Below, in pieces: positions 1 to 46,121 of a stretch of DNA of 64,000 nucleotides. The notes beneath the pieces were generated by a model. The model saw only the letters and a program-made list of their open reading frames with translations, searched no databases and had not been told where the DNA came from. This stretch comes from Piromyces finnis finn (taxonomy: Eukaryota; Fungi; Neocallimastigomycota). The first letter of the stretch is position 1. Each line of letters opens with the position of its first letter. The translations under genes were made by a program, and so were the position numbers. Where the stretch lies: assembly GCA_002104945.1 (NCBI GenBank), contig MCFH01000085.1:1-64000 (forward strand). Direction: 5' to 3'.

Positions 1-3000
1 AAACCTCTAATAGAAACCTAAATAAGTTAGAAAAAATAAAAGTAAACAAAGCTCTGTTAGAGAATTTAACCGTTCTTTTAACGACCTTTTGAAAGAAATT
101 AAAGAAAGGGACAGCCTTCTGAAGAAAGTTGTTTTTCTTTATACAAAAGCTTTTAATAGGAGAACTTCTATATTAAATTCTCTTATTAACAAACAACCAA
201 AACTTTAAAGGATGCTATGGTCATTGCTATTAAAGCAGATGAGCTTCTATCTGCTTATGAAAGTGATGATGAATATGTACCCAATAAAAGAACTCAAAAC
301 AAAAATAATTATTATAAGAGAAAATAGAAGTTGAAGATAAAACCTCTTATAATAATAACAGAAATATAGTAGTACTGATAATGAAAAGACTATAAGAAGA
401 AGCTAAAGAATCAGATCTGGATGCTTTGACCAAAAGCTTTGCCCAGATGAAAATTATATCTGCCACCGTTGTAACCAGAAAGGACATGATGCCCGCTTCT
501 GCCCAACGAAATGACCGATGTGAACAAAATCATAGCTACCTCCTCAAAACCCAAAACCATTTAAATTAAATGGGGGAAGTTTCAATCTTCCCCTTCTAAC
601 TCCAAAATTGATAATAACCAAACCACAACATCAACAACATTAATGAGCAAATCTATGTTGATGATACACGTGATTCCATAAAACAAAAAAATTTCCAAAT
701 TCTAAAGAAAAATTCTCTGACCCTTTGGTGGATGATCCAATCAATGAAAATGATAAGATTATGTTAAACGTGATCACGTGACAAATACAGTCGATGATAA
801 GGACATCGAAAACCTTATTTATGCATTCAAGAGAAAAAAGTTCTGAAGAAAGTGAAGAAAGTGATGATGAGGATCACGTGACTCAGTCGAAGAAAAAGAA
901 ACTTCGAGAAAATCCATTACCAATACACACAAAGGCCACTCAGATGAAAGAACAGCAAGAAATTCGTAATGAGAAAAATTCAAATTTTCATACCACTACT
1001 TCCCGCCTAGACATCTTAGACCCCTCGGTAATTGCAGGCAAGAATATTCCTCTGCTAAGATGAAAAATAAAAGAAACCAGAAATAAAAGAAGAATTGGTC
1101 CAGATATACCAAGTAAACAGGACGAATTAGAAGAAGTTATAGATAGCAAAAAGTCTCCCAAAAACAACTATTATGACTTCCTACGTTCTATTGTCATGTT
1201 GGGCAAAAATAAAGAATATAATATTTTTGATGCCCTTAATAATACAAATGCTGGTATCTCTTTTGCACAATTACTTTGCAGTCAGTCCTATCATCAGAAG
1301 ACTTTGTGCCAAAGGTTTAAAGCTTGATCCAAATGACGTTCGGAAAATAAACGCCATTCAAATTTGGATCTTAATGATGATGATATTAATTCATTTATTA
1401 ATATCATTAATGAAAATTATAATAATAAAAATAATGAAAACAATGATGATGCTGATAATGACAATGATGATGATATTATCAATATAGCAGATAACGAAAT
1501 TAATGTCATTAATAAATCAACATTGCTTCTGTCATTGGCTCAATTGATAATAACATTGTCCGAGTTTTAGTAGATACTGGTTCTGATGTTAATGTTATTA
1601 CTAAATCCTTCTTTAATTTAATATCAGCAAATCATAATATTACACATTTTAAGAGAACTTTTCTTTAAATTAGCTAGCAAACAAGTTATTTCAACAAATC
1701 AAGCTGTTAATTTAACTCTTAAATTTGGTGATTTAAAAATCTATGCATTATTCTGGATTCTAGAAGATGAAGATTCATGTTATGATATTATATTAGGTCG
1801 TCAATCTCAAAAGGATCACCGATTATACATTGATCCTGATGATGACTCTCTCTACATGAAAACTAATTCATCTCCTATTATGGTTGCTCGTCCCTCAAAT
1901 TTTAAACAAAATAAAAATAATCTTTCAAATATTTCAATGATTCATTGTTTCAATCCATCAAATATTAATGAATCTCAATTTAATTCATTTAATAATAATA
2001 TCAAAATTCAAAATTTTAATTCGACTTTTAACAATAAAAACAAACTTTTATATTCAATTAAATTTCGACATTTATTCAAATTTAAAAATAAATATTTTTA
2101 TCCAAAATATCACATTTTTCATTCAAATTTCAGCAAATTTCCAAAAAAGAATTAAAAACGATTCACTTATTAAATTTTCAATTAATAAGTCAAATCTTGT
2201 CGGCCGTGATGAAGCAGAAAAAACGCCAATTATTCACGAAAAATGCCACAAAATCAAGATATATAAAAATAAAAGTAAAATTCTAAAATATAATCATTTG
2301 AATATTAATATTAACAGGAAATTAAAATCAAGAAAAAAGCGAAATAAACAAAATGATATAATCAAAAATTCATCAAATAATTCGTTTAAGAATATATATT
2401 TCAGTATAATAAAAAGTGTAAAAGAAAGTATTTCAAATTCAATTATTTTCAATCTAAAAGATTATATCAAATCAGTAACTTCAATTTTAAAACGACATTA
2501 TTTCGACATATTAAAATCAAAATTTCATCTATTTTTCAAAGTTTAAAGAAAGATAAAACCACATTAAACATTTATATACAAATAATACGACAATTACATT
2601 ACAAAAATATATAAAAACACAAAAATATTTACACTACGACATTTAACAAAATTTCACTTCATTTTTTTTATTTCTCTTTGAAAAAAAAAAAATTTTATTA
2701 ATAAAAATTTTCAAATTTTTCATCATTTTTTTATAAACCTTATTTTATATTATTTTTATCATATATATATATATATATAGAAAAAAAAAATTTAAATTTT
2801 TAAATATTTAGTATAAAAATATCAAAAACTTATATATTTATTATTATTTATGAATATTTTTATCAGCTACCACTAAGTCGTATCTTAGGGGAGGAAATCT
2901 TGATAAATAATAATTATAAATATATTATAAATTTGATATTAGTAGAAAATTTTATTATAAAATAATTATTAAATAATTTTATATAGTTTATTATAAAAAT

Positions 3001-3521
3001 ATAATTTACATAAAATCAAATATTTTATAAATTTATATATTTGATTGGGTTAAATTATAAAAATAATTTTTAATATAAAGAATAATAATAATTTTTAGTA
3101 GAAAATAAGAAGACTTAGATTATTAATAATAAGTTAAATTTTAATAATAGTTAATATAATTAATTAGTGAATACATAATAATATTTAAAAGACAAAAATA
3201 AGTTTTTATATAATAAAAATTATTGTTAAAAAGAGCGTAAGAACAATAAATAAAAGAAAATATAAAAACGAAATTAAACTTGTCTAATTTGTAATTATTG
3301 TGTTAATAATAAATAATATTTTATAGAATAAATCTGGTGTTATTATTCTATATAAATATTATTAAATAATAAAACTATTAAAACTATAAAATAACTTAAA
3401 ATAAATTAATAAAACTAGTAGATATTGTTAAAGCTCGTACAATAGCTGTCGAGATAAAACAATATAAAGATAACAGAAGAAGTAGTTAAAAAGTTATAAT
3501 ATAACTACCAATCCGTTATCA
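1..3521 (+). mobile_element. Gag-protease-only LTR retroelement (family A), 5' part cut by the window edge, frames broken by single-base indels
   Basis: Near-identical inverted copy of the element at 16108-20638. Gag remnant 1-570, protease region 794-2546 (VLVDTGSDVNV encoded near 1562-1594), polypurine tract AGGGGAGGAAATCT just before the LTR, 3' LTR 2901-3521 (TGATAA...TTATCA). Confidence 0.9.
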
Positions 3522-3525
3522 ACAA

Positions 3526-4583
3526 TGATGCGTTGACCGATACATTTTTGAATAATATGATATTTTTAATAAATAATAAATTCTAATATTTATGATGAAA
3601 CAATAAATTTAAAATAAAATAAAATATGTTTTATAATTAACAAATAAATCACTCAAAAACTCGAAAATAAACTCTTTTTATTATGTTTAAATTATCTCTT
3701 TATTATATTTATAATTTATTTATTGTCTATTTATTGTCCGCCTTTTTTATAAAGAAGAATTTTATCTTCTTTTTATACATTTTTCATTTATTACATGTAT
3801 TATTATTTTTAACTATTAAATATTATTACTATTGTGATTATTTATTAAAATTAAAAGAATAAATTAAAATTATGTCTTAATATTATAAAAATGTTATAGA
3901 ATATTACTTATTGATTTTCTTATTACTTCAAAATGTTTAAAATTAGAAAAACTATTATAAATTATCATTAACTATCATTAAATGTATAATACCTTGAATA
4001 AAATAATTAAAATTTAAAATTAAAATAATATTAAAATAAAATTAAAATAAAAATTAAATAAAAATTAAAATAAAATTAATAAAATCAAATATTAAAAGTA
4101 TCAATTAATATAAACACATTTTATACAGAAACATAAAAGAGTTCTGTATTTTATCTTTAAAATTGTTATTATTGTTCTATTTCCAGGCTTTAAATTAATC
4201 ACTTTTAGTAATAATTACTCAGTTATTTATTTGTTAATTTATATATATAAGTTTGAAAGAATTTCTAAAGAACACTTGGATAAAACACTAGAATTAATAA
4301 TTTAATGTATATCATTTTATTTTTTTAGTTTATTTATTCATTTTTATTTACTTATTATTATTTTATTATTTTAATACATTTTGGATTGAGTAGTTTTATT
4401 TTATTTAATAATTTATTTTATTATTATCTCTATTAAGTCGTTTTTATTCATAATTTATTATTTAATAAAGAGAATATTATTTATTTAAAAGAAAGGGTTA
4501 TATTTCCATAAAATTATTATTTATTCATTTTTAAGGGTTATTATCTTTTATTTTTATTATAAGTCGCTATGGGTTAAGTCGTG
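3526..4583 (-). mobile_element. Solo LTR, family B, truncated at its right end by a family F LTR
   Basis: Starts TGATGCGTTGACCGA and follows the 1100-bp LTRs at 20643-21742 and 29369-30468 up to GTCGTG. The last ~46 bp are absent. Confidence 0.9.
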
Positions 4584-5714
4584 TGTTAAGTTTTTGGGTT
4601 TGGTTATGCGGCCAGGTCAGAATGTTATTAATTATATAGTAAAAATGTTTTTTAAGAAATTAAATTTAATTATAAAATAACACCTTAAACTCCCAAATGA
4701 AAAATGAAAAATTTATATTTACTTTAAAATAACTTTTTATAAATTTTTTATTTATTTAATATAATAATATAAATGATATTATAAGTAACTATATAATTAA
4801 GATTATAACTATAATCTCTACAAAGAATTAAAATCGAATTCAATTCATTCTCTTTTATATTCTTTGTTCAGATTATTAAATTGATATTAATAAGAATAAA
4901 GTATTACATGTAATATATTAGTAATATAATTAAATAAGTAATAAGATTGTTTGTTTGTTTGTTTGTTTGTCATGACATAAAATAAAATAAACATATGATT
5001 AATCATTTAAACAGTTGATCCTAATTAGTAATTATAAAAACTATTCAATTAATAATTCATCATTATTAATTGATATTACCATAACATATTTGTTATAATT
5101 AAATAATTATTATTTTCAAAATTATTTCTAATAAAACTTGCCGTTAACCTATTTTATAATGATTAAGATTATTTAATTTATAGGTGTTAACTGTTACACC
5201 TAAATGGGTCTAGTTCTATTTTTAGTAACAATCGTTATCATTAATTAAATTAATATAACTAAAATTCCTATTGATATATTTTTAATTTCATCAAGTCATA
5301 AGAAATATTTATGATCCATACTTGATATCATATTGATTTTAATTTACCTAATAAAATCTTTAAATGATCATAACTTCCTTAAATGATCAGTTAGAAGGAC
5401 CGCGATTGTACCAAATTGTAGCTTTCTTCCTAAGCTTTCCAATAAACCTAGTTTCATCACCGTAGCACTTACAGCCGTAGCGATCGTTTTTGGCGAGTTA
5501 CACCTTATTTCGTACTTGCTTATTTTTGGTTAAGGGTTATAGTGTATTGATATTAAATTTTTGAAATCATAACCCTTTCACTGAATCAAAATTTAAAAGG
5601 TGACTTTTAAAAGTGTTTTAAAATAATTATTGAAATTATTTAATTATAATTATTATGTTTAATTAATTATAGATATTATCTGAATTTGTTTTAAATCCAG
5701 TTAATATCTTCACA
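4584..5714. mobile_element. Probable solo LTR, family F (TG...CA)
   Basis: Starts TGTTAAG right after TCGTG of LTR B and ends CTTCACA. A homologous copy lies at about 44208-45291. No ORF. Confidence 0.7.
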
Positions 5715-5765
5715 ATTACTTGTTATATTTAACCTATTAACTAATATATATAAAAACCTTTTACA
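5715..5765 (+). mobile_element. Terminal 51-bp fragment of a family D-like LTR, inverted
   Basis: Its reverse complement TGTAAAAGGTTTTTATATATATTAGTTAATAGGTTAAATATAACAAGTAAT matches the LTR terminus at 30477 and 36789. Confidence 0.8.
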
Positions 5766-5768
5766 AAA

Positions 5769-6332
5769 TGATATAATTTGATAATAATCTTAATTTTGAA
5801 TTTTACTTCAAAAGTGATTATTATATTATATCTTTTGTTATAACTATATAAGTTATATTGATTAAGATTTAAAATCGTTTTTATAAAAATTAATAAAATT
5901 GTTTTGTTAAAACACTAAATTGTTTTATTAGACTTGTTTTTCTAATATTTAAATATTTAAATTTTATTTATTTAAGTATAAAAGTGATTATTAAAATTAT
6001 AAAATATTAATCTAACTATATAATATTTCTTTATTAATAATAATAATAATGATTAAAATAAGAATTTACATGTATTTATATTTTCTTTTGAATTTAAACT
6101 AATTACTAACGAAGTTATTAACATTAATTTAACAATTAATTTAACAAATTATATTTTTGATCTCGATTAATTAATTTATTATTTTTTTCAATAATCAAAC
6201 ATATGCAGTGTTTAGGATTATTTTATTTAAGATTTTGGTAAGTACTTAATTAACTATAATTGTTTTAAGTTATTTTAGGGTTAACTTAAAATCAGTATAA
6301 TATAATTTTATTTATTATTTCATTATTTATCA
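5769..6332. mobile_element. Solo LTR, family E, internally deleted
   Basis: TGATATAA...TTTATCA termini. Homologous to 15307-16104 and about 45436-46118. Confidence 0.8.
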
Positions 6333-7089
6333 AAATGATGCAATATATTTCAAAACACCATAAATAAAATATAATTATGAACGTTAGCAATAGGGAATGA
6401 TATATGAATAATATATTAGTTAATTGTATTTATTTCTATTTATAATAATAAAATAAATAATAAAATAATAAATTTTATAATAATATAATTAAATAGATTT
6501 TGGTTTAAAGATTCTTTATTTAATTATTATTATTATTATGATTATAACATTAATAACATTCAATACTAATAGGATCGAAAGTTATTATTGAATAAATATA
6601 AATAGTTAAATATAATGTGTAAATATAAAAATATGTTGATGAAAGTATTATTAATGATAAAATATAACTTTTCTGAAATAGTAAAAATAAACAATAAATA
6701 TTCTTTTCTTTTATAACTAATATTTAAACTGAAGGAAATATAATAAATACTAAATACGTAATTATTAACCTAAAACTAACTTAAACTAAAACTATTAATA
6801 TAAAAATAAAATAAAATAAAACTAATACTTAAAACTAAAATATCAAATATTATTTATAAATGAAAAGTTCTCTCTCTTGATATCTTCTGCTTTAACACTC
6901 TCTTTTATATCTTTTCCTTTCTTGTGTAACTAATTATTCTAATGTATGTGTAACATTTGCGTCATAATAATTTATACTAATATAGTTTAATTATTATTAT
7001 CATTAGTAATTGATATACAATTTATAAAAGGATTAGATATTATTCATAAAATATTTAAAATATTATATTTTTCTATGCATCTTGCATCA

Positions 7090-12825
<5,736 letters not shown>

Positions 12826-12828
<3 letters not shown>

Positions 12829-14283
12829 GTTTAAATTATTTGATTCAGATGGATTGTTTAAATTTATTTTGGTTGCTTTATTGTAATTATTTTCTGGTAA
12901 GGTCTTATTATAATAATTATTATAATATTGATTATTTAATTGATTAGGGTAATTATTATTAATATTGTTCCTGTTATCACTATCATTAATGTTGTTCCTC
13001 ATATTATTCTTATTAACATTACTGACGTTATTAAATGTATTATTATTCATTGTGTTGTTTTTATTATAACTATTAAAACCATTATTATTATATCCATTAT
13101 ATCCAATAGTATTATTATAATTATTGTAGCTATTAATATTATTACTTTCATTATAATTGTAATTTCCATTTGGATTAAAATTACCTTTCTTATAATCATT
13201 ATTGGTGTACATATAATAATTGTTATTCATATTATTATAGTTATTTTTATGATGATAATCCATATAATTATTTTCATTAATGTTTCTATTATCCTTTTGG
13301 TTGTTGTTATTAGTATTAGTATTAAATCCATTTAAATAACTATTATTGTTGTAATTATTGTTATCATTATTATTATATAAATTTCCATATCTGTTATAAG
13401 AATTTCTTTGATTATTAAATTGATTAAAATTATTGAAATTATTGAAATTATTTCTTTCTCTTTTATTTGGGCATTCACTAGCTTTATGTCCCATTTGCTT
13501 GCAATAGTAACATCTGATACTCCGGAAGTTACTATTATTAAAATACACATTTTCATAATTTCTTGGGATACCTGGATAGGATCTTCCGATAGGCTTTTCT
13601 TGTACATAATTTGAATAAGAGTTATTAAAATTGCTATGGTTAATATTAACATTATCATCATCTACTAATCCTCTATATAACGGATGGTCTAACAAAACAT
13701 TTCGAGTATTTTTTGTATTTTGGTATACCATAGAAATATTGTTAGTTTCAGTACTTTCTATGGTTCTTCTTTCGGCTTTCTCAGCCTTTTCAGCAACTTT
13801 AAAAGCTTCAGATAATGTTTCACATTCGGCTAATATAACTTGGGAGTGTGGATAAACTCTTTTCTTAATAGAGTTTAAATAGTCATCCACAGAAATAATT
13901 TTCATAAAATCTCTTTCCAAGCGGTGGTAAAGAGTTAAGTATTTATAGTTGAAGCTTTTTATAGTTTCGTTTTGTTTAATTTTTAATGTTTTTAATACTG
14001 AACATTTATCCCCTGGCTTTATTTCCAGATAATCTTCAATAGCAGATTGTACCTCTTTATAAGTAGGATACCTTTTAACATTATTATGAGAGGTACATAA
14101 AGATTTCAAAACATTCTTGATATCTGCTTCAACGGCAACTTTTAACCACACAAATATTCTTGAGGGCTCTTGTATATCATGGATCTCCATGACACTTATA
14201 AAATCCTCCATCCAGGAATCAATATCCTTTCCATAATCGCAGAGGTATGGAAGGTCTCTTTTTACTTTAGTGGCGTCAACCAT
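12826..14283 (-). CDS. Gag of element 1 with CCHC zinc knuckle
   Basis: 485-aa ORF with CYYCKQMGHKASEC and an Asn-rich C-terminus. Ends at TTTAAAC-TAG. Confidence 0.9.
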
Positions 14284-14516
14284 TTTAATTATTTATTTAT
14301 TTTAAAATAAATTTATATAATAACTTCTTATATATTATTGTTATAATAATTATATATATATATATATAATATTTGTGTATATTTAATAGTTTTATAGTAG
14401 AAAGTTTTATTTATATAAAAGAACTTATTTTAATTAAAAATAATAAAAAAAAAAAAAATAAATATAATTAGAATAGAAATAATACTATTAATGTTTCATA
14501 TTATTCAATATTGCTA

Positions 14517-14534
14517 CGCCCGGATTCTCCACCA
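14517..14534 (-). promoter_or_regulatory. Primer binding site, probably for tRNA-Ala
   Basis: TGGTGGAGAATCCGGGCG on the minus strand, identical at 29343-29360. The complement ends ATTCTCC-A-CCA, which places U at position 70 as in the alanine G3-U70 identity pair. Confidence 0.75.
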
Positions 14535-24700: not shown

Positions 24701-26474
24701 GTATTTGATGAAAACCAGAGAATAAATCTAATGTAGATAAATATTTTACATTATTACCAATAGAAAATAATATTTCTTCGATGTATGGAAGTGGATATGA
24801 ATCTTTTATTGTTATAGAATTTAATTTTCTATAATCTACACACATCCTCCATTTTCCATTCTTTTTTGGTACTAATAAAACTGGAGAAGACCAAGATGAT
24901 TGTGATGGTTCTATTAAATCATTCTTTAAAAGCTTTCCTATTTCTTCTTTTAGAATTTCCATATGTTCTTTATTAGAAATACGATACATTTTCTGTTTAA
25001 TAGGATCATCTTGATTTAATTTAATTTCATGAGCTAATAATTTTGATTTACCCAAATCATCAGTATCATTAGCTAGAACATCTATATTAGTTATTAAAAG
25101 ATTCTTCAGTTGGTCTTTTGCTTCTTTTTGTGTTTCATCAACTATTTTATTAATAAGTTGTAATTTAGAATCACTAGTAGTTTTAATTTCTAAATCTTGA
25201 TATTTATCATTCTGACTAGTTAAGTAATATATTAATGCATCTTGATTAATTTCTTCATCAAATTCTTCTATTAAGTTAGTTTGATTCATTTCATTAATAC
25301 TTTCAAAAGATCCAATTTTGTGAATATCATCAGTTTTCTGATATAAAGTATGATCAGAAAAGTCCATAATTAATTTCATATTAGCTAAAGTTTCTACACC
25401 AATTAAGACCTGGAATATATCTTCTTTTTCAATAAGTCTAAATATTTCTTTAGATGTTATATTACCAATAGTAATTTCAATTTCATATAGATGCGACTCA
25501 ATAGTAGTATTGGAATAAGCTTGATATAAAGTTTCTCTAATTTTTGAAACTGGTTTTAATGGAATATTATTTTCTAATAAGAATTTTCTAGTAATCATAT
25601 TTATAGATGAACAGGAATCCAAATATACAGTAGTTTCTATTCCTTCTATTTTGCATTTTGATTTCACAACTTTATCTTTTCTTATGGTGGAAAGAATTGT
25701 AGATTCATCCTCAATAATTTTAGTAAATTTTAATGCTTTTGAAAGTTCTGTTTTTAATTTAGGACTAATTTCAAGTAGTTGACCTATTGTTATATTTGCA
25801 AATTTTTCTCCTATATCTTTAGTTATATTATATTTTTCTTGATCTGCTGATATAACTAATCTTTTTGTACCTTTTTCATTTGGTACATCTTTTTCTTTTT
25901 GACTTGGAAGTTCAATCTCTTTTGCTAATTCTATTATTTCCTTTTCTCGTTCTTTTTTATTATTTCGTTTAGCTTTATCTATAGTGGGTTGATTAATGAA
26001 TGAAGGATCTAATTGTTTTAATGCTTCTGTTGAATTAGTGTTATTATTAATATTATTATCATTAATGTTATTATCTATTTTATTACTTTCATTATTATTT
26101 ATATTAGTGTCATTATTCATACTCATATTATTATTAATATTATTATTATAATTATTATTAAGATTATTATTATTATTATTATTTTCATTTTCAATTACAG
26201 TCTCCATTTCTACTTCATTATTTGGAACTTCAATTATATCTTCATAAGTATTATTTAATGGTTCTCTAGTCTCATTACTTGGAACTCTAATTGGTTGTGG
26301 ATTGTCACTTAATTTTTCTTTGGTAGTTCTTTTATATGGTTTAATATCAGTATTCTTTTTAGCTTTTCTTATTACTGGAATAGTAATTTCTTCATTTACT
26401 GGTACTGATATTGTAGCAAAAGTAGTATTGGTTTGATTTATGGGAGTATTCCTTCTCCCACTCATAAGTTTAAA
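21755..26474 (-). CDS. Pol polyprotein of element 2 (protease, RT, RNase H, integrase), with frame breaks
   Basis: ORF 24633-26465 has YLDSCSS; ORF 24103-24633 has YMDDLL; RNase H (TDAS) lies near 24090-24102; ORF 21755-23809 has HSIGH...CHDC, LDIIG, TDNG and GPF. Confidence 0.9.
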
Positions 26475-27687
26475 TGATTTTGATTAGAGTTTATAAGGCC
26501 TTGTTTTTCCATTTCTGCAAGTTCTTGGAATGTATATTTGCAATCTTGCATTTTGTGGCCTACTTGTTGACATCTAAAACATTTATTTCTTTGAGACTGG
26601 TTAAACATATTCACTTGACTTTGAGGTGTGGTTTGATTAACTTTATTAGTAGTAGTATTCATTTTATTAGCATTATTAGAATAATTATTAGAATTTTGAT
26701 ATGATTTATTTTCTCCCATATTGGAATAATTATTGTTACTAAATGTATTAGAATTATTAGGGTATTTATTATAACCATTATTATATGCATTTTGATCACC
26801 TTGATAGTTATTATAATTATTATTATAGTTATTATAATTATTAGTATTGAAATTATTTGGGTAATTATTTCTGTAATTATTCCTTTTGTTAAAACGTTGA
26901 TTTCTCATATTATAGTTTCCATTGAATCGCATATTATAATTATTATAATTATTATTTTATCATAATTATTATTATCATAATTATTATTATAGTTATTATT
27001 ATTATAGTTATTATTATAATATCCATTATAAGTATATGGACTATCATTATTATTATAATAATTATAGTTAGTTCCACCACTATGTTGAGTAAATAGATTA
27101 TAATTTTGGTTTTGATATGGATCAAAGTAAGGTTGGCTGTCCGTAAACATATTAACATTATGATACTGAGGAACTTCAGTTGCTGATTCAGCTAATTCGG
27201 CAACCTTAAAAGCAGCTTCTATATCTTTAGGTTGGGCAGTGATTACTTGAGTTCTAATGAAAGGACGAGAAATGATGGAATTAGTATAATCTTTAACAGT
27301 AATGAATAGTTGGGATCCAACATTAAGATTTTTATATAAGTTTCCATATCTCCAGTTGAAATCCTTAATACTTTCTCCTCTTCTAATTTTTAGAGACTTA
27401 ACATTGAAGCATTTTTCTTGAGGCGTGATTTCTAAGTATTCTTCAATAGCCTCTTTAATATCTTCGATACTAGGATAATTTGTTCCAGTATCACTTTCTG
27501 TTTTTAAGTCATCAATGATTCCTTTTAATCTACCTTGGACACATTCCTTTGCCCAAGCGAATATCTTTTTGGGATCATTGATGTCAGATAGGTCCATAAC
27601 TCTGCTGAATTCTTCAGCCCAGCTTTCGATATCCCTATCTTGACTACCAATTCTAGGTAGCATTTTAGTGATTTCACTGATCTTCAT
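26462..27687 (-). CDS. Gag of element 2, split by an indel in an AAT-rich tract
   Basis: Capsid-like ORF 26905-27687 is similar to element 1 gag. ORF 26462-26932 carries CFRCQQVGHKMQDC. Confidence 0.88.
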
Positions 27688-28278
27688 TTTTGTATATATA
27701 AATTTCTTATAAGGTAAAATAATTAAAATAAAAGAATAATTTAATTTGAAATAAATGATAATAAAGAAAATAATTGGAATTTATATATTATATATATATA
27801 TATGTGTTTTGAACTTTAATAATATAATAATATTAATAATATTTATAAAATTAAAAATGAAAAGAATTGAATATATAAATAATTGATAAATTGATAAAGT
27901 ATAAAATAATATAAAATTTATAAATTTTTTTTTTTTTTTTTTTTTTTTTTTGAAAAAAAATTAAAGAAAATTATTTAGAAATTGAGAAGTATATTAAAGA
28001 AAAATAAAAGAATAAAAAATAAGTAATACAACAGAAATCTATATATATATTGTATAAATTATATATATTATATGGATTATATAAATTATAAAAATTATAT
28101 AAATAAATGAAATTTAATATTGAATGAGATCAGATCAGAGAAGTATTTTATAGAAAGTATATTATATTATTATTATTAGTCAGGAATAATAGAAGCTTTA
28201 CGGAATAATATCTAATTATAAATTTAAATGCAATTTATTAACTCTCAATTTTAAATGATCAAGGAAGAATGAAAGAAT

Positions 28279-28320
<42 letters not shown>

Positions 28321-29187
28321 AATTAGGAATTTATAAGAATATGTATATTTTTTTTTATTTAATTTAATTATAATAGTTTATATATATTGTTACAATTATT
28401 TATTTATTTTTAGGCACCCGAGGCACAGTGACTATAAAGACTTTCGGATCCCTACTAAACCCCCACCTTTAAATGATAAATTTTCACTTCCAAAGTTCTG
28501 CTCCTTACTCAGGATTTTCAGCCGAACTTGCTACTCTCTTACTTGAGAATCAAATAAAGGCTGTCTAGTATACCTACTCCCTCTTGCTGAGTGTGTACCC
28601 GCCTTACTCTCTAAATAATAATTGCTTTAATTATTGCTATATTTCGAACTCAGTCTATTATATAACAACAACCAATATATACTTACTATTTTTTTTTTTT
28701 TTTTTTGTTATAATTTAAATTAAAAAAATTTTTAGTCAATAATTAAGAATATTGAAATAAATTATTCGCTTAATATGTAGGTAGCCTTAAGCTAAGAAGT
28801 TTTTCATTCAACAGCCGCCTCTACAAATAAGCACTGGTGAATTAATTTATTCTCTTAATTAAGAAATAAAAATTGTATATTTAATTCAAATTATGATCTT
28901 ATTATTAACTGCTGAGAAGGATTAACTTTTTTTTCCTAGTTTTTACTATCACACTGATCCCCTGGATAGATCAGAAATATAACAAACTAACTGAATGGAT
29001 TAAGTTATCCTTATTAATAATAAGAACGGAAACGATTATAGGAATTATAGAAATTTTCTTCCTTGTGTAACGTATATGACTAACTATTAATCACTTAGTC
29101 TTTAATTTCTTAAATACCCTTTTTAGAAATATTAAAATTTTTATAATTTTAAAATTATATATATTTCCTTTTATATATATAATTAAA

Positions 29188-29226
<39 letters not shown>

Positions 29227-30476
29227 GAAGAATATATAATAAAATTAAATTAAGTGTAAACTGTTTTTTTTTTATAAACGCTTAATATCTTAGAATTTAT
29301 TAGTATTATTATTAATATTATTCTTTTTCATATCTTTGGTCACGCCCGGATTCTCCACCAAAATTTTATGATGCGTTGACCGATATATTTTTGAATAATA
29401 TAATATTTTTAATAAATAATAAATTCTAATATTTATGATGAAACAATAAATTTAAAATAAAATAAAATATGTTTTATAATTAACAAATAAATCACTCAAA
29501 AACTCGAAAATAAACTCTTTTTATTATATTTAAATTATCTCTTTATTATATTTATAATTTATTTATTGTCTATTTATTGTCCGCCCCTTATAAAGAAGAA
29601 TTTTATCTTCCTTTTATACATTTTCATTTATTACATGTATTATTATTTTTAACTATTAAATGTTATTATTACTATTGTTATTATTTATTAAAATTAAAAG
29701 AATAAATTAAAATTATGTCTTAGTATTATAAAATATTATAGAATATTACTTATTTGATTTTCTTATTACTTCAAAATGTTTAAAATTAGAAAAACTATTA
29801 TAAATTATCATTAACTATCATTAAATGTATAATACCTTGAATAAAATAATTAAAATTTAAAATTAAAATAATATTAAATTAAAATAAAAATTAAAATAAA
29901 AATTGAAATAAAATTAATAAAATCAAATATTAAAAGTATCAATTAATATAAACACATTTTATACAGAAACATAAAAGAGTTCTGTATTTTATCTTTAAAA
30001 TTGTTATTATTGTTCTATTTCCAGGCTTTAAATTAATCACTTTTAGTAATAATTACTCAGTTATTTATTTGTTAATTTATATATATAAGTTTGAAAGAAT
30101 TTCTAAAGAACACTTGGATAAAACACTAGAATTAATAATTTAATGTATATCATTTTATTTTTTTAGTTTATTTATTCATTTTTATTTACTTATTATTATT
30201 TTATTATTTTAATACATTTTTGGATTGAGTCGTTTTATTTTATTTAATAATTTATTTTATTATTATCTCTATTAAGTCGTTTTTATTCATAATTTATTAT
30301 TTAATAAAGAGAATATTATTTATTTAAAAGAAAGGGTTATATTTCCATAAAATTATTATTTATTCATTTTTAAGGGTTATTATCTTTTATTTTTATTATA
30401 AGTCGCTATGGGTTAATTCGTGTTTATTCGGCTAGTTTTTATTACGTTTTTATGTGAGTAGCGTATCAAAAAATTA

Positions 30477-33400
30477 TGTAAAAGGTTTTTATATATGTTA
30501 GTTAATAAGTTAAATATAACAAGTTAATTAAGTTAGTTATTACCTCTCTATACGAGTTAATAACTAAATAAAGTTTTATAAAAAATAATAAAAGAAGTAA
30601 AATAAATATTATAACACAAAAATAAATATAATACGATAAATATTAATATGAAATATTATTTACTTAAATAATTATTATAATTATTATCTTTTATTTATTA
30701 GTTATAATTATATACATTAATTATTATTATAGCTATTAATTTACTTTAATACTAACGCTAAAGTATTTAACGTTAGTTTTGACTATACTATTTAACTATA
30801 TGAGTTTATTTTCTTTACCACTTGATTGGGTAAAGCAAATAGACTTCCTATTTAATTAATAACCATTAATATATGGTTATGCATATATTTGGCCAATAAA
30901 TGGTGACCAGAATATATGGTTTCAATTGAAATATTTGTGGGCAAACTTATGGCCACAAATATTTCTTACAATGCCCCCCTGAGGAGAAAACCTAGGCAGG
31001 GTTTTGGACACTAACCATGAATTCCTGGTAGCATTTATCTTGAAATTCCTTGAGTAGCTTATCATAGTGGGAGTTCTTGTCAATGATATCAGCATCAACC
31101 CACTCTTGTCTAAAGTCACTAAAGGTAGCTAAGTATTGGTAGTTATCCTTCTTTCTTCTGGCATTCATGATTTTGATAATTTTCTGGTAGCCCACTGGTG
31201 CAGGTGTTAGTTCTTCAGGTTTGTTATGGTAGGGTTCAAGTTCACTGATATGAAACACAGGGTAGACATTGGGGAAAGGTGACTTGCTGATATCCAACCG
31301 GTAGTTAAGCTTGCTTTCATCAATTCCAATAACCTTGAAGGGACCGTACTTTCTTGCTTGTAGCTTGTAGAAGGGAAGAGGGTTGTAATTTTCTGGTTTT
31401 CTTAACCACACCAAATCCATGAGCCTAATTTTAGGGTAGTTAAGTTCTCTTCTATGGTCCAAGTGGTCTAAGAACCGTGTTCTTGATATGTCCAGCATGT
31501 GCTTTAAGTTACCTAAGTTGTGAGCGAAGCTATCTAATATAGGAGCTTCACCAAGTGAGTGGACAAGTTCTGAGTCTTGAGGGTTCATATGTACCTGGTA
31601 GTTATACAAGGCTAGGAATGGGGACTGCTTAGTAGAACTGTGTACTGCATTATTATAGCAGAACTCAGCTAAGTACAAGTACTTCAACCATTCGTCGTCA
31701 TCAAAGGTCTTCACAAAGCATCTAAGGTACATACTTACGTAGGAGTTATTGCGTTCTACCTGACCAACTGTTTCATGATGGCCAGTAGTAGCAAGGTTTA
31801 CTTCTACGCCAAAGAACCCCATAATGTCCTTCCACAACTTACTAGTGAACTGGACACCACGATCCGTAGTAACCGATTTGGGACAACCATGTAACTTGAA
31901 TACATGTTGTAAGTATGCTAAGGCTGTTTCTTTAGCAGTAGGCATACTTCTAAATCCCACTAAGTGTATCATCTTGGTTAACTTATCGCTACAAACCATG
32001 ATACAACCTCTTCTAGTGACTTCTGGGGGTTCTGAGGGACTACTACCTGGTTTTCTACGTTCCTTAATAGGTAGGTCCGTCAGGAAGTCGATTTCTACTT
32101 CTTGCCAAGGTAAGTCTGCAACTTTTACCCTAGCAGCGCTACCGTACGGCTTGTGTCTGTTGTCCTTTTGGGTACAACATATGGTACAAGCTTTAATATA
32201 TCCCGCAATGTCATCCTTCATTTTTGGCCAGTAGTAGTTTCTGGCTATCAGGTCATAAGTTTTATCTTTTCCCAAATGACCTGCTGTTTCACTATCGTGG
32301 TTAAGTTTTATGATTGTTTCCCTTAACACCTTTGGTACATATGTACGTTCTGGTGCATCCTTTCTAACAATCAACCCATTAACCATCAACCACTTCTTTT
32401 TGATGAGCTTGTGGCCTCTTTTTGCGTCAAGACCATCTCTAATTTCCCTAGCAAGCTCATCCGTGTTGTAGGCTTGTTTCAGTTCTCCCACAAAGCTTAC
32501 TTCTAACACCGCATAGCACTCTTCTTCCACGGGTGGAAATTCTTTTACCTGTTCAGGTCGAAGGAGGCTAGCTTTTTCCATCTCCAGTTGTACCTGTTCT
32601 GGAGATACCATTCTTGATAGGATATCGGCTCTACCATTCATTTTTCCTGGCCGATATATTATTTCGAAGTCGTATGCAGCAAACAGCTCTTGCCATCTTG
32701 CCTGTCTTGCTGTCAACAACTGTGGTTTTGTGGCGAACAGGAGATTCCTATGGTCACTATATACTAGGACCTTATGTTTCGCACCCATTAACAGGTGTCG
32801 CCACTCGATGAAAGCATTCCTAATAGCCAACAACTCCTTTTCCGTGATGGAGTAGTTGATTTCTGCTTTCGTAAGTTTCTTGGAATAGTAATACACAGGG
32901 TGTAGTTCATTGTCATCGCCTAGTTGTGATAATACACCACCCACTGCGTAGTTACTAGCGTCGCACTCCACTATAAACTGACGGTCATGGTCAGGATATG
33001 CTAATACTGGTGGAGACAACAGCATTTCTTTTAACTTCTCGAACGCCTGGATGCGTTCTTCATTCCACAGGAATTGTACCTTTTTGGACGTCATCGCATA
33101 TAACGGCCTTGCTATCTTAGAGAAGTCCTTTATAAACTTCCTATAATAGTTGCAGAATCCGAGGAATGACTGTAGTTCTTTAATGTTGGTTGGTTGTGGC
33201 CAACTTGCTACAGCTTTTAACTTTTCTGGGTCGGTTTTAATACCATATTTTCCAACTACATGACCCAGGAATGCAAGTTCTTCCTTGTGGAACTCACACT
33301 TCGCTAACTTAGCTACTAGACGATTATCTATTAGCTTTTGTAGGACTCTTTTTACATGCCCTACATGCTCTTCAAGTGACTTGGAGTAGATGATGATATC

Positions 33401-36400
33401 ATCCAAGTACACTTGACAGCAGTCGTTGATTTCTTCTGCCAGCACCGTATTAATGAACCCTTGGAACGTGGCAGGAGCATTAGTCAACCCAAATGGCATC
33501 ACTAGATATTCATAATGCCCAAACTTGGTTGAGAATGCCGTCTTGTATTCGTCACCTTCACGAATACGCACGAGGTTGTAGGCAGACTTCAAATCCAACT
33601 TGGAGAAGATAGTCGCGCCTTTCATAGCCTCAAACACTTGACTGATGAGTGGTAAGGGAAAGGAGTTACGCACTGTTACCTTATTAAGACGCCTATAATC
33701 AGTACATAATCGTCTTTCACCACTCTTTTTGGGCACGAATAACACAGGATAACCTGCAGGACTTTCTGACTTCCTGATGAAGCCTTTTGCCAGGTTTTCC
33801 TCTATATATTCCTTCAGTGCTTTTTCCTCTTCTGGATTGAAGGGATATATAGGCCCTTTATGAAGACTAGCATCCGGCTCCAGGTCGATCTTACAGTCGT
33901 AAGGACGGTGTTCTGGTAGCTGGTTAGCTATTTCTTCGTTAAATGCTTCTTTGAAATTGTGGTAGTACTTCTCCACGATTTCTTCAGGTGTAGGTTGATT
34001 TTCGTTTAAGTTTTCTTCCTGTACCAACCCTACGTAAATGTGATTTTTCTCTAAGTCAACACTCTGTACCAACCCTACTGAAACGGGGTTTTTCTCTAAG
34101 TCAGGACTTCGTGTCAACCCTCCGGAAACACATTTTTTCTCTAAGTTAGCACTCTGTACCAACCCTACTGAAACGCAAGTTTTCTCTAAGTTGGAACTCG
34201 ATGCCAACCCTCCGGAACTTCCGTTCCTGGTTCCTTTTGTAGCCTTGTGGCTACCATTACCCACGATTTCGGCTTCGATGTTTTCTGCGGTTACAGTTAC
34301 CAGAGGCCTTCTTGCTTTTGCATTAGTAACTGTAGTTATGGGACTTAATTGAGTACAGTAGTAGATATTGCCGTCATTTACACCATAACTGTTGGTGTGT
34401 CCTTTATCCTTATCATTATCTACTACGAAGTACCTCACTTGTGCATCTTTATCATAACCTCTGTAGATAAAGTGCTCATCCATGAAGCCCAGTCCCACAA
34501 TGATCATCTCCGGCATATTGTCGGATAGGTGACAACTTGTGTTGAAGCAGTATGGCTTAGCTTCTTGTTCGCCAGATGGAGTTAACCATAACTTCAACTG
34601 CAAGTCATCTGAGAACTGCTTTAACTCGATATCACCATTCACAGTTCTGAATATGGCTGGTTTGTCCACTACCTTTAACCCGAGCTTCTTTGCTAAATTT
34701 GGGTGAATGAGGTTTGTGGTGGAACCAGTATCATACAAGACTTCTACCCTTTTTATATCTCGAGGGTTGCTTCTTGCATTTATTTCAGCTACTAGTTGGT
34801 TCTGACTGTAGTAGCTGTTATTGACCGTCGTTTGACTTGCCATAGCCTTAGGTAATGGGTTATTTCCCATACTAGAAGGTCCTTGCTTTGGTTGGAAGCT
34901 AGAACTTCTTCTAAAGCTTGACTTATTTAAGGATTCACGACGTTCTTTGGCACCGTTATTGTTTTTTACGTAAGCCTGAGTGTTGGTCTGCTCAACTTTA
35001 GGCTTATTATTTGGCTTGTTGTTCTTCTGCTTTAACTCAGCCCATCTAGATGGTCTACATGGGTCTGTGATATCCAACAAGGCCATAATAGTGGTCTGGC
35101 GGTCTCTTTTGTCGTACTTTTCTATGGTTTCATTACGGAAGACTGCTTGGTGGTCATCGCACTTTAGCAAGACTTCACTTAATGTTTCCAGCGTACGTTC
35201 CGGTTCAGGGATATCATAGAACGCTTCCCTGACAGAAGGCCTGACCTGTTGTATTAACACCTGTCTCCTAACATTTTCAGGAAGCCCAAGTGTTTCCGTC
35301 AATTCATTGAACTCTTCCAAATAGTCGTATGCTTTTCCCCACTCATGTGTGAGCTTAAGCAACTTTGACTTGCAGAGTTCATGGGGAGACTCTGGTGGAA
35401 ACTTATCTTGAAGGTGGAGGAATAGTCTTTCAGCATCGGGATTCCTACGCTGCAACATCCTCTCTCTAAGTCTATACCATCTCAATACTTTCCCACCTAG
35501 ATGATCTTCAATGAAGCTAACCTTTGCCTTTTCGTCGTTACCATAGTCATATGGGTAACGTTTGAAATGACGTAAGCACTTCTCTTGAAAACCCTCTAAG
35601 TCTATTCCATTATTATCAAACATAGGCACTTTTTCTTCATACCTATGTACTCGCCAATCGAACATCTTCACGTCCCCATCCTCGGAATATTCCGTAGGGT
35701 TGGTGCTGCTACTAGTTCCAGCACCATGAGGATTACCCATACCACCGGTTTGATAGGATGTTCTTTCATGAGCTCTGGCTTCAGCTCTTCTGTTCATGGC
35801 TTCGACTTTAGCCTCGAACAATTTTTCTCTTTCTTCTAGAGCGTTTCGTTGCTCCCTCAATCTGGCCATCTCTTCTTCAAGCTCTTTTTTATAAGAGACA
35901 AAGGCACTAGATTGACGGTACAACGTTTCTTGGTTGTTTAGCACTTGCTGGTGGTCTTGTAACCTTTCCTCATGTTCTGCGGTAAAGGCATTTTCCACAG
36001 CATGCAACTCTTCCAAGCTAACTTGGCTAGCTGACTCATTTGCTTCCAACCTTTGATCCACTTCAACAAATTTTTGCTGAAGAGCATCGTTTATCTCGCT
36101 CTTGTAAACCTCAATACCCCGAAGTTGTTCTTCCATAGCACCCAGACGGTTTCCCATACTAGCAAACTGGCTAGATATTTCCGAAACCCATCTATTAAGA
36201 AGAACTTCAATGTGTTGCATTGGGTTTACCTCACTATTATTAGTAAAAAAGAAAGAAGGATCAACAGGGGTGGGCATAGAATCCCCCTGTTGAACCTGTA
36301 AATTCTGATTAGATTCGACCTCAGTGCTTTCGAGAAGCACCGGGGTTCGAACCCGTGACATTCCCTCTACACCATCCATGCCATCCGCGCTCGCCGCGTC

Positions 36401-37282
36401 AGGACGGGTCCCGTCCCTTACGAATGATGTTTTTGTGTCCAATTTATGGACACCCCGAGGGTTAGGCGACTTACCTGCGTTTTTCATTTCTAGTTCGAAA
36501 ATAAATTCTTTTAATAAATTAAAGAATTTATTATATAAAATATGGTTATAATGAATTTTAAAATTTAAAAATAATGAATTTTTATTGCTAAACTATTAAA
36601 AAATAATTATTTTTAATAATAAATTTACTTCTTTTAAATATAATATTTGAATATTATATAAAATATTGTAAATAATTATTATTAAACAATAATTTAAATA
36701 AAATAAAATATGTTTTTTAAGAATTTTTAATAACACTAACCTAATTAAAACTAAGCTAACGTAAGAACTAACTATAAAGCGTTAGTATTGTAAAAGGTTT
36801 TTATATATGTTAGTTAATAAGTTAAATATAACAAGTTAATTAAGTTAGTTATTACCTCTCTATACGAGTTAATAACTAAATAAAGTTTTATAAAAAATAA
36901 TAAAAGAAGTAAAATAAATATTATAACACAAAAATAAATATAATACGATAAATATTAATATGAAATATTATTTACTTAAATAATTATTATAATTATTATC
37001 TTTTATTTATTAGTTATAATTATATACATTAATTATTATTATAGCTATTAATTTACTTTAATACTAACGCTAAAGTATTTAACGTTAGTTTTGACTATAC
37101 TATTTAACTATATGAGTTTATTTTCTTTACCACTTGATTGGGTAAAGCAAATAGACTTCCTATTTAATTAATAACCATTAATATATGGTTATGCATATAT
37201 TTGGCCAATAAATGGTGACCAGAATATATGGTTTCAATTGAAATATTTGTGGGCAAACTTATGGCCACAAATATTTCTTACA
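30477..37282 (-). mobile_element. Intact Tf1/sushi-like chromovirus LTR retrotransposon, family D (element 4)
   Basis: 494-bp LTRs 30477-30970 and 36789-37282 that look identical, 5-bp target duplication AATTA (30472-30476, 37283-37287), polypurine tract AGGGGGGCAT, single gag-pol ORF. Confidence 0.95.
30992..36487 (-). CDS. Single-ORF Gag-Pol polyprotein with C-terminal chromodomain-like segment
   Basis: 1831 aa. LYDTGS (protease), YLDDII (RT), VECDAS (RNase H), H-x5-H...CTIC, IDFLTD, TDRG, GQVER (integrase), GPF motif, then YQYLATF...EWVD. Confidence 0.95.
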   Translation of the reverse strand: MKNAGKSPNPRGVHKLDTKTSFVRDGTRPDAASADGMDGVEGMSRVRTPVLLESTEVESNQNLQVQQGDSMPTPVDPSFFFTNNSEVNPMQHIEVLLNRWVSEISSQFASMGNRLGAMEEQLRGIEVYKSEINDALQQKFVEVDQRLEANESASQVSLEELHAVENAFTAEHEERLQDHQQVLNNQETLYRQSSAFVSYKKELEEEMARLREQRNALEEREKLFEAKVEAMNRRAEARAHERTSYQTGGMGNPHGAGTSSSTNPTEYSEDGDVKMFDWRVHRYEEKVPMFDNNGIDLEGFQEKCLRHFKRYPYDYGNDEKAKVSFIEDHLGGKVLRWYRLRERMLQRRNPDAERLFLHLQDKFPPESPHELCKSKLLKLTHEWGKAYDYLEEFNELTETLGLPENVRRQVLIQQVRPSVREAFYDIPEPERTLETLSEVLLKCDDHQAVFRNETIEKYDKRDRQTTIMALLDITDPCRPSRWAELKQKNNKPNNKPKVEQTNTQAYVKNNNGAKERRESLNKSSFRRSSSFQPKQGPSSMGNNPLPKAMASQTTVNNSYYSQNQLVAEINARSNPRDIKRVEVLYDTGSTTNLIHPNLAKKLGLKVVDKPAIFRTVNGDIELKQFSDDLQLKLWLTPSGEQEAKPYCFNTSCHLSDNMPEMIIVGLGFMDEHFIYRGYDKDAQVRYFVVDNDKDKGHTNSYGVNDGNIYYCTQLSPITTVTNAKARRPLVTVTAENIEAEIVGNGSHKATKGTRNGSSGGLASSSNLEKTCVSVGLVQSANLEKKCVSGGLTRSPDLEKNPVSVGLVQSVDLEKNHIYVGLVQEENLNENQPTPEEIVEKYYHNFKEAFNEEIANQLPEHRPYDCKIDLEPDASLHKGPIYPFNPEEEKALKEYIEENLAKGFIRKSESPAGYPVLFVPKKSGERRLCTDYRRLNKVTVRNSFPLPLISQVFEAMKGATIFSKLDLKSAYNLVRIREGDEYKTAFSTKFGHYEYLVMPFGLTNAPATFQGFINTVLAEEINDCCQVYLDDIIIYSKSLEEHVGHVKRVLQKLIDNRLVAKLAKCEFHKEELAFLGHVVGKYGIKTDPEKLKAVASWPQPTNIKELQSFLGFCNYYRKFIKDFSKIARPLYAMTSKKVQFLWNEERIQAFEKLKEMLLSPPVLAYPDHDRQFIVECDASNYAVGGVLSQLGDDNELHPVYYYSKKLTKAEINYSITEKELLAIRNAFIEWRHLLMGAKHKVLVYSDHRNLLFATKPQLLTARQARWQELFAAYDFEIIYRPGKMNGRADILSRMVSPEQVQLEMEKASLLRPEQVKEFPPVEEECYAVLEVSFVGELKQAYNTDELAREIRDGLDAKRGHKLIKKKWLMVNGLIVRKDAPERTYVPKVLRETIIKLNHDSETAGHLGKDKTYDLIARNYYWPKMKDDIAGYIKACTICCTQKDNRHKPYGSAARVKVADLPWQEVEIDFLTDLPIKERRKPGSSPSEPPEVTRRGCIMVCSDKLTKMIHLVGFRSMPTAKETALAYLQHVFKLHGCPKSVTTDRGVQFTSKLWKDIMGFFGVEVNLATTGHHETVGQVERNNSYVSMYLRCFVKTFDDDEWLKYLYLAEFCYNNAVHSSTKQSPFLALYNYQVHMNPQDSELVHSLGEAPILDSFAHNLGNLKHMLDISRTRFLDHLDHRRELNYPKIRLMDLVWLRKPENYNPLPFYKLQARKYGPFKVIGIDESKLNYRLDISKSPFPNVYPVFHISELEPYHNKPEELTPAPVGYQKIIKIMNARRKKDNYQYLATFSDFRQEWVDADIIDKNSHYDKLLKEFQDKCYQEFMVSVQNPA

Positions 37283-37293
37283 AATTAGTAATT

Positions 37294-37365
37294 GGGGTGT
37301 TAGCTCAGCGGTAGAGCAATTGACTGCAGATCAATAGGTCTTCGGTTCAAATCCGGAACGCCCCT
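37294..37365 (+). tRNA. tRNA-Cys (GCA)
   Basis: 72-nt cloverleaf: GGGGTGT/ACGCCCC acceptor stem, GCTC/GAGC D stem, ATTGA-CTGCAGA-TCAAT anticodon arm, TTCAAAT T loop, oligo-T terminator. Confidence 0.97.
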
Positions 37366-44207: not shown

Positions 44208-44360
44208 TGTTTTAGGGTTTGGTTATGCGACCAAGTCAGATGTTATTAATTATATAGTAAAAATGTTTTTTAAGAAATTAAATTTAATTATAACACATAA
44301 AACTTCCAAGTATGAAAAATTATTATTTGTTTTTAAAATAACTTTACTATAAATTTATAT

Positions 44361-44403
<43 letters not shown>

Positions 44404-45155: not shown

Positions 45156-45204
<49 letters not shown>

Positions 45205-45410: not shown

Positions 45411-45435
45411 TATTATAATTTACATTAAAAAAATA

Positions 45436-46118: not shown

Positions 46119-46121
46119 AAA

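Follow-up and report, generated by a model that had tools for sequence, protein, structure and literature searches.

Stacked Ty3/gypsy retrotransposons upstream of tRNA genes in the anaerobic fungus Piromyces finnis

The first 37 kb of contig C217 of the anaerobic fungus Piromyces finnis (Neocallimastigomycota) are occupied by a long terminal repeat (LTR) retrotransposon pile, which stops just short of the 5′ end of a tRNA-Cys(GCA) gene. The stretch analyzed here comprises bases 1-64000 of this contig (referred to as the window), and the genome-wide searches cover the assembly of 56,455,805 base pairs (bp) in 232 contigs. Together, the junctions within the pile and the spacing of LTR ends and tRNA genes across the genome make it very probable that the pile arose by serial integration of several Ty3/gypsy families, directed by the RNA polymerase III (Pol III) complex.

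Anatomy of the stack upstream of tRNA-Cys

Tiling with an LTR library assigns 37,252 of the 37,282 bases at positions 1-37282 (99.9%) to LTR retrotransposons, leaving 30 bases that belong to no element. Self-BLAST, junction reading and the library tiling resolve ten abutting pieces from six families (A-F; Table 1), and the pile terminates 11 nucleotides (nt) 5′ of the tRNA. The pieces are separated by spacers of 3-8 nt: ACAA (3522-3525), AAA (5766-5768), AAA (6333-6335), AAAAA (15302-15306), AAA (16105-16107), AAAA (20639-20642), and AAAAATTA (30469-30476). Because the window begins at base 1 of the contig, inside the stack, the stack is possibly longer. The base composition of the window is extremely AT-rich (13-30% G+C), with 43% G+C in the interior of element D.

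The junctions can be read to the base. Element D is flanked by a perfect 5-bp duplication, AATTA, and deletion in silico of D together with one AATTA places the end of the B element 14 nt from the tRNA. Farther out, the solo B LTR of rank 9 ends at ..GTCGTG, a site likewise used by a further family, G, in the second stack of the window. The 51-nt D-like stump of rank 7 is the remnant left after F cut ~63-65 nt upstream of the tRNA.

A first-pass annotation of the window had described a stack of insertions by at least five families, with this order of pieces, with these spacers and with B lying 14 nt upstream once D is removed. The order was reproduced by self-BLAST and library tiling, and all the spacers it gave are base-exact. 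The 14-nt position of B was recovered as well and is one value within a 12-18-nt distribution (see below). The stack itself stands, and the family count is amended to six. The same annotation saw identical LTR pairs in the two proximal elements and mismatches in the next two, which agrees with the counted differences: going outward, 0/494 for D, 0/1100 for B, 17/621 for A, and 2/754 plus 5 indels for C.

Table 1. Positions of the elements and tRNA genes in the two stacks of the window.
Feature	Position	Strand	Basis or remark
Rank 10, family A element, inverted, truncated by contig start	1..3521	+	LTR 2900-3521; 98.4% identical to reverse complement of 16108-19642
Rank 9, family B solo LTR without final 51 nt	3526..4583	-	97-98% identical to full-B LTRs
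Rank 8, family F solo LTR (TGTTAAG..CTTCACA), second-window family	4584..5714	-	Boundaries from full F element in L020
Rank 7, 51-nt terminal stump of inverted D-like LTR	5715..5765	+	94% identical to D LTR positions 1-53, reverse strand
Rank 6, family E solo LTR, internal deletion of ~234 bp	5769..6332	-	Self-BLAST, tiling
Rank 5, family C full-length Ty3/gypsy	6336..15301	-	LTRs 6336-7089 and 14542-15301
Rank 4, family E solo LTR, complete	15307..16104	-	Self-BLAST, tiling
Rank 3, family A element, 4.5 kb	16108..20638	-	LTRs 16108-16729 and 20017-20638
Rank 2, family B full-length	20643..30468	-	1100-bp LTRs 20643-21742 and 29369-30468
Rank 1, family D full-length	30477..37282	-	494-bp LTRs; AATTA at 30472-30476 and 37283-37287
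tRNA-Cys(GCA), anchor, followed by T-run	37294..37365	+	ARAGORN; Rfam 67.9 bits
Second stack at tRNA-Ile: F-like, A-like bits, then E, B, B, G, B stump	44206..49349	-	Self-BLAST, tiling
Second-stack E	45439-46116	-	Tiling
Second-stack B	46122-47199	-	Tiling
Second-stack B, proximal, split by G	47204-48266	-	Tiling
Second-stack G solo LTR, duplication TCGTG	~48267-49298	-	Junction reading
51-nt stump of split B LTR	49299-49349	-	Junction reading
tRNA-Ile(TAT), 19-nt intron	49364..49456	+	Rfam 58.1 bits; ARAGORN with introns

Distances between LTR ends and tRNA genes

The assembly was searched for an LTR end with a loosely defined A-box (TRGNNNAR) following after any 8-38 nt, and the reversed pattern served as the control. 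Family D gave 55 matches and 0 in the control; about 33 are junctions with tRNA genes, in which the LTR ends 11-14 nt from the mature 5′ end. These junctions carry about 20 distinct spacers and are found at genes for Arg, Gly, Glu, initiator Met, Met, Trp, Cys, Ser, and other tRNAs. A stricter D pattern gave 18 matches against 0. Family B followed with 27 matches (about 20 tRNA junctions at 12-18 nt, mostly 15-16), A with 43 (14 junctions, 13-18 nt), E with 14 (about 8, 12-15 nt), and C with 9 (about 5, at 15-16 nt and one at 22). The peaks are narrower than these full ranges and differ by family: 11-13 nt for D, about 14 for E, 13-16 for A, 13-17 for B, and 15-16 for C. Since the reversed-pattern controls were 0 throughout, the spacing between tRNA genes and LTRs is not chance.

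A second sample was centered on tRNA genes: 10 kb around 20 of them, chosen by tRNA score alone and not by LTR. Together with the window, these loci hold about 21 independent tRNA transcription units, and a recognizable LTR end lies 11-22 nt upstream of at least 16 of them. We refer to this position as the first insertion window. Young D copies enter it in one orientation (about 50 junctions, with 0 in the other); the inverted pattern matched only 17 internal junctions at the primer-binding site (PBS). Inverted copies do occur for A, for E, and for one older D-like LTR.

Some tRNA genes stand in pairs 8-10 nt apart, Glu/Arg and Ser/Met (L003:8419-8574, L005, L007, and L019:6670-6834). Such tight pairs are probably dicistronic, and in those that can be read the LTR ends precede the first member. 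A full D element also lies 11 nt upstream of a tRNA-Glu pseudogene that has lost 10 nt from its D-arm region (L009:8418-8490, and the same in L008 and L010). ARAGORN reports this sequence as a tRNA-Glu with an ~890-nt intron, a call that we rejected.

Family F was searched for as an LTR end, 50-80 nt and an A-box, which gave 69 matches and 0 in the control. Once F-G and F-F abutments and internal junctions are set aside, more than 20 distinct junctions remain, and in these the F end precedes the tRNA by 63-69 nt (mode 66). A 44-54-nt stump of a first-window LTR (D, B, A, C, E, H, or others) fills the space up to the gene, together with the spacer of that LTR. As the F distance is constant whichever LTR occupies the first window, it is measured from the tRNA rather than from the LTR sequence. 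This second insertion window at about -66 and the minus-strand coding of the elements (see below) are features beyond the reading given in the first-pass annotation.

A relative of F from outside this genome has the same geometry. In L026 (JGI metagenome 3300021285, 28% G+C), a tandem pair of elements whose Pol protein is 74% identical to that of F at the amino acid (aa) level has its LTR end ~65 nt upstream of a tRNA-Val(TAC) gene, in the same divergent orientation and within a non-LTR flank. The two copies of this pair share their middle LTR (LTR-internal-LTR-internal; 6348-17536), with a period of 5676 bp and 100% identity. L026 alone is informative among the relatives of the D and F polyproteins; eleven other metagenome and draft-genome contigs break inside or at LTRs or hold no tRNA. 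For family G, a single solo LTR at L007:1484-2790, 100% identical to the G of the window, stands between two divergent tRNA genes (Glu and Gly) at exactly 67 nt from either gene, bordered by an A-like stump toward one of them and by a D stump toward its counterpart. This LTR is probably a recombinant of two G insertions.

The second stack of the window, ahead of tRNA-Ile(TAT), is independent of the tRNA-Cys stack and repeats both distance rules, with the B LTR end 14 nt and the G end 65 nt upstream of the gene. Stacks are also found on other contigs: at least five LTRs precede tRNA-Arg in L006, and in L001 the order is A, 8 nt, D and then tRNA-Arg. A different arrangement is seen on contigs C47, C74 and C79, where an A LTR end is followed after 4 nt by the start of an inverted B-type LTR, recurring at ~5.57 kb three to four times per contig; this suggests a tandem repeat whose unit combines an A element with a B-type LTR.

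The insertion pattern may extend to a unit that is not a tRNA gene. A repeated sequence of ~90 nt, with a B-box-like AGTTCGAGACC and a terminal T-run (L014:6335-6425; many contigs), has D, B and E LTR ends just upstream at matching offsets, with B 3 nt beyond D as at tRNAs. In L014, the unit stands directly upstream of a degenerate F-like element. ARAGORN and Rfam make no tRNA call for it. A snoRNA identity was considered and rejected, as Rfam returns only a sub-threshold SNORD56 match and the fold is no better than that of shuffled sequences. No 5S or U6 genes were found in the window and the examined loci.

The sole host genes between the two stacks of the window are two paralogous intronless open reading frames (ORFs) on the minus strand (37804-38985 and 40882-42183; 393 and 433 aa, ~77% nt identity), both with an N-terminal chitin-binding (CBM18) domain.

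The elements, their integrases and the proposed tether

All the elements are of the Ty3/gypsy type. They have direct LTRs with TG..CA ends and 4-5-bp duplications, and the order protease, reverse transcriptase (RT), RNase H, integrase is found in D, C, B and F (Pfam). The ORFs of the stack elements that share an orientation are all on the minus strand, with the polypurine tract (PPT) beside the left LTR and the PBS beside the right LTR; hence the 5′ LTR is the one next to the tRNA, and the elements are read in the direction leading away from the gene. The termini and the protein identities divide the families into two apparent lineages. A, B, C and E have TGAT..ATCA termini and 4-bp duplications (e.g., ACAA in L019), while D, F and G have TGTWA..YACA termini and 5-bp duplications (AATTA, AAAAT, TATGA, TATCA, and TCGTG). 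The polyproteins of D and F share 45% identity across 1019 residues, and C is 36-39% identical to D or F over RT-RNase H.

The coding regions differ in their state of preservation. Element D has a single intact gag-pol ORF of 1831 aa (36487..30992) with protease, RT, RNase H, integrase and a Tf2-type SH3 domain (Pfam SH3_Tf2-1), and D LTR copies with 100% identity are found elsewhere in the genome. In B, the LTRs are identical, yet the pol frame is split into several ORFs, with the same domain order as in D. The ORFs of C are fragmented and encode a Gag with a zinc knuckle followed by protease, RT, RNase H and integrase (Pfam). Element A encodes a Ty3-type capsid and a protease and has no RT or integrase by Pfam, and it is therefore non-autonomous. 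A PBS of the TGG type, TGGTGGAGAA.., adjoins the LTRs of A, B and C, as does a G-rich PPT; no TGG-type PBS adjoins the 5′ LTR of D (window positions 36749-36788).

The integrase of D shows homology to Ty3 integrase (7q5b; E 6.7e-28). Its last ~65 residues can be aligned with canonical chromodomains found in related elements, although the aromatic cage is degenerate, and relatives below ~36% identity carry Pfam Chromo. The structural model of the D integrase C-terminus (pLDDT 86) consists of an SH3 barrel and, after it, a unit of three strands plus one helix. The top Foldseek match to this model is the Ty3 integrase in the TFIIIB-tDNA complex 7q5b (148 columns, probability 0.98), and the next are the chromodomains of Rhino, CBX and HP1 (TM scores 0.7-0.79, root-mean-square deviation 1.3-2.2 Å). 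Alignment and model support the reading of this region as a predicted SH3-type C-terminal domain (CTD) plus a degenerate (vestigial) chromodomain, i.e., the module of Ty3. By alignment, F likewise has an SH3 and chromodomain-like integrase end.

We propose that the integrase complexes are tethered to the transcription machinery of the tRNA genes, most likely to TFIIIB positioned by TFIIIC on the A and B boxes. The matching offsets of the D, B and E ends at the repeated ~90-nt unit would speak for such a tether. Strand transfer would then take place at a fixed distance before the mature 5′ end: 11-13 nt for D, 13-17 nt for the families A, B, C and E, and, in the case of F and G, ~63-69 nt. The first window falls roughly at the position where yeast Pol III begins transcription. 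As integration would spare the gene together with its leader, which is short, the site would stay a target. Each newcomer would insert between the gene and the previous element, shifting the pile outward by the length of the element plus one duplication, and this would be why neighbors lie only 3-5-nt A-runs apart. The 8-nt spacer between B and D would have arisen because D inserted 3 nt closer to the gene and made a 5-bp duplication after B was in place. Second-window families would sever the proximal LTR ~51-54 nt from its end and leave a stump. Later, LTR-LTR recombination would generate solo LTRs and deletions between copies of the same family. We infer the TFIIIB tether, the time order of the insertions, and current activity; for D, the tether may, by analogy with Ty3, be the SH3-chromodomain module.

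Order of insertion, alternative readings and known systems

The first-pass annotation had read the tRNA-Cys locus as repeated insertion at a fixed distance in which newcomers displace older elements, and had proposed plotting the distance from tRNA 5′ ends to LTRs for each family. The distance peaks are narrow and family-specific, with controls at 0; together with the other stacks and the duplication chains, they strongly support this part of the reading. It had further proposed a polarized, time-ordered record in which LTR divergence rises with rank, and here the outcome is mixed. A time order is argued for by the logic of the targeting and by the duplication chains. In L019, E, D, B and an inverted A stand as solo LTRs ahead of tRNA-Ser, and the chain of ACAA duplications gives the insertion order D, then B, then A. 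At tRNA-Cys, the proximal pairs are the youngest (0 and 0 differences) and the distal pieces are broken; the LTR pairs of first-rank elements at other loci differ at 0, 0 and 6/491 positions. However, divergence does not rise monotonically with rank, F appears to be recombinant, and, as F and G enter at about -66 behind the proximal LTR, the order is not purely by distance. A strict time order is only partly supported: the order is broadly youngest-nearest, in a record that recombination has edited, as the non-monotonic series and the F without a duplication indicate.

Several observations count against serial directed insertion or against the chronology drawn from it. With respect to order, the A LTRs at rank 3 are 2.7% apart and those of the more distal C at rank 5 only 0.27%. 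Either LTR of the full A differs by 7-8 changes from the LTR of the distal inverted A, yet by 17 from its own partner, as could be expected if the full A had arisen by recombination between two neighboring A insertions. The F of the main stack has no target duplication: its left flank is TCGTG, from the cut B LTR, and its right flank ATTAC, from the D-like stump. Joining of a B flank to a D-like flank is read most simply as probable loss, by F-F recombination, of the DNA between two F insertions. Tandem solo LTRs of one family that are 7-8% apart exist as well (A-A in L006 and B-B in the window). Moreover, junctions with identical spacers recur on several contigs, and segmental duplication therefore inflates the raw junction counts. 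LTR-pair dating is unreliable inside such stacks.

These observations, along with the G LTR in L007 that sits exactly 67 nt from two divergent tRNA genes with unlike stumps, and the periodic A/inverted-B arrays on C47, C74 and C79, are compatible with an alternative in which tRNA-directed seeding occurs and the present order results mostly from unequal crossing-over, ectopic exchange, gene conversion and segmental duplication, leaving no usable chronology. We consider this alternative a serious contender, if a doubtful one. Against it, the LTRs within each of the two proximal elements are identical and the duplications clean, and decay grows outward from the gene. Insertion step by step, in the order now observed, accords with both the ACAA chain in L019 and the window's AAA plus AATTA spacer separating B from D. 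In addition, recombination between direct repeats deletes elements and does not reorder the survivors.

Other observations bear on the targeting and the tether rather than on order. Of 224 D ends genome-wide (16 in the control), 56 are internal LTR/PPT junctions, and only ~50 of the ~168 external ends are directly beside a recognizable A-box; the remainder may be buried in stacks. At L001:6842-7625, an inverted E solo LTR interrupts the internal region of a D element, at a distance of 876 bp from the tRNA. The LTRs of this D are identical to each other, and E represents either an untargeted insertion or a passenger carried along by a transposing D copy. A 40%-identical relative on a metagenome contig has no tRNA within 8 kb. 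The Foldseek E-values for the D model are weak (0.015-0.3), and Pfam finds no Chromo domain in D at E<=0.1, so the chromodomain reading comes from alignment and fold. B and C are without any chromodomain, and since B has only ~28 residues past its SH3-like region, the A/B/C/E lineage must use another tether. Finally, read support is not decisive, as short Logan contigs of the same sample neither support nor contradict the junctions.

Two further explanations are both very improbable. One holds that a local DNA feature (A-tracts, bent AT-rich DNA or LTR termini), and not the Pol III machinery, attracts the elements, and it draws on the extreme AT-richness of the genome, on the A-runs that make up the window spacers and on the fact that most insertions adjoin another LTR. 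However, the distance to the tRNA 5′ end is constant while the upstream neighbor varies, with F cutting six LTR families ~66 nt from the tRNA and its metagenome relative keeping ~65 nt to tRNA-Val in a non-LTR flank. The spacer sequences vary widely across tRNA species, and A-runs are abundant genome-wide, yet the reversed-pattern controls remain 0. The other holds that the array is wholly or partly an assembly artifact, with repeats collapsed or chained at a contig end; the start of the window at contig base 1 inside the stack, the 10-25x greater depth of LTRs over internal regions in public runs and the lack of any bridged junction among the listed contigs would suit it, but the perfect duplications around D and G with exactly reconstructable empty sites, the same geometry at dozens of loci on many contigs and the intact LTR-PBS...PPT-LTR structure of the full elements argue against it. 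The assembly is probably based on long reads. The E-B junction of the second stack accounts for an apparent joint in short contigs, from 16105 to 20641, which leaves out A.

Mobile elements that target Pol III genes are the textbook case of choosing a safe harbor. In Dictyostelium, insertions of the non-LTR element TRE5-A have a fixed orientation and lie about 44-54 nt upstream of tRNA genes. Its more distal window is reminiscent of F and G, but it uses target-primed reverse transcription and its proteins are unrelated. Among the elements compared, D is likened to Ty3 of Saccharomyces cerevisiae (Metaviridae) in distance class, 5-bp duplication and predicted CTD-chromodomain tandem. Ty3 integrates about 15 nt before the mature tRNA 5′ end, no more than a few bp from the Pol III start, with a 5-bp duplication (PMC5006619, PMC5911963), and its integrase CTD and vestigial chromodomain contact TBP and Brf1, acting as a distance ruler (PMC8632968). 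However, Ty3 is a single low-copy family found in both orientations, whereas at least seven families use the site here, young D copies take one orientation and the stacks are deep. The D integrase is roughly as distant from Ty3 as from other chromoviruses.

DGLT-A of dictyostelid amoebae is a Ty3/gypsy element without a chromodomain whose copies, for the most part solo LTRs, are found 13-33 nt (mean 15) upstream of tRNA genes, and DGLT-A.1 and A.2 of D. lacteum lie 55-65 nt upstream (PMC5006619). Compared by behavior only, the B/C type (no chromodomain, 13-17 nt) and F and G (~66 nt) act alike to these elements. The differences are that DGLT-A belongs to another eukaryotic supergroup and is present in tens of copies per genome, most of them inactive, that deep ordered stacks do not appear in the part of the published account considered here (PMC5006619), and that the ~66-nt families of P. 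finnis have a chromodomain-like end.

Other Ty3/gypsy elements located 1-30 nt upstream of tRNA genes are Tj1 (S. japonicus), Tca8/beta (C. albicans), and Ylt1, Tyl3 and Tyl6 (Y. lipolytica) (PMC5911963). All are from Ascomycota, and none is described in that review as a multi-family, two-window system; the review, from 2018, covers only ascomycete and Dictyostelium elements and none from early-diverging fungi (PMC5911963). In yeast, Ty1, Ty2 and Ty4 resemble the present case in that several families pile up upstream of the same tRNA genes, decay to solo LTRs and are rearranged by ectopic recombination (PMC5911963). These Ty1/copia elements spread over a ~1-kb window and so do not form base-exact, duplication-spaced stacks. 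A search of the literature on Neocallimastigomycota, Piromyces and anaerobic fungi found no description of tRNA-targeted retrotransposon stacks. The targeting in P. finnis is thus of a known kind; what is unusual is the number of families per site, the two exact windows used by sister lineages, the one-sided insertion of D, and stacks tens of kilobases deep.

In the literature covered, such targeting was previously known from a few ascomycete yeasts and social amoebae, and the case in Neocallimastigomycota widens the question of whether it is ancient or was repeatedly invented. The system stands out for at least seven co-resident families in two distance classes, for the near-saturation of the sampled tRNA genes and for an intact, apparently recent D. 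It offers a natural comparison of two related integrases with different rulers and a third lineage without a chromodomain. The stacks also explain assembly breaks at tRNA loci in these genomes and caution against LTR-divergence dating within them. Moreover, anaerobic fungi are difficult to engineer, and the integrases might be put to use in them for site-specific integration.

A broader proposal is that tethering to TFIIIB through the SH3-chromodomain module is, rather than a peculiarity of budding yeast, an old property of fungal chromoviruses that was kept and diversified in anaerobic fungi. D and F, as sister lineages sharing one integrase architecture, would read a single complex with rulers for -12 and -66, the unrelated, chromodomain-less lineage of A, B, C and E would have converged on the first window, and the stacks would form a genome-wide, largely ordered archive of invasions. 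We put this forward tentatively and consider it rather unlikely as it stands. If true, near-complete occupancy of the tRNA genes and base-exact insertion would have laid down an archive similar to a sediment, which could be read once recombination is accounted for.

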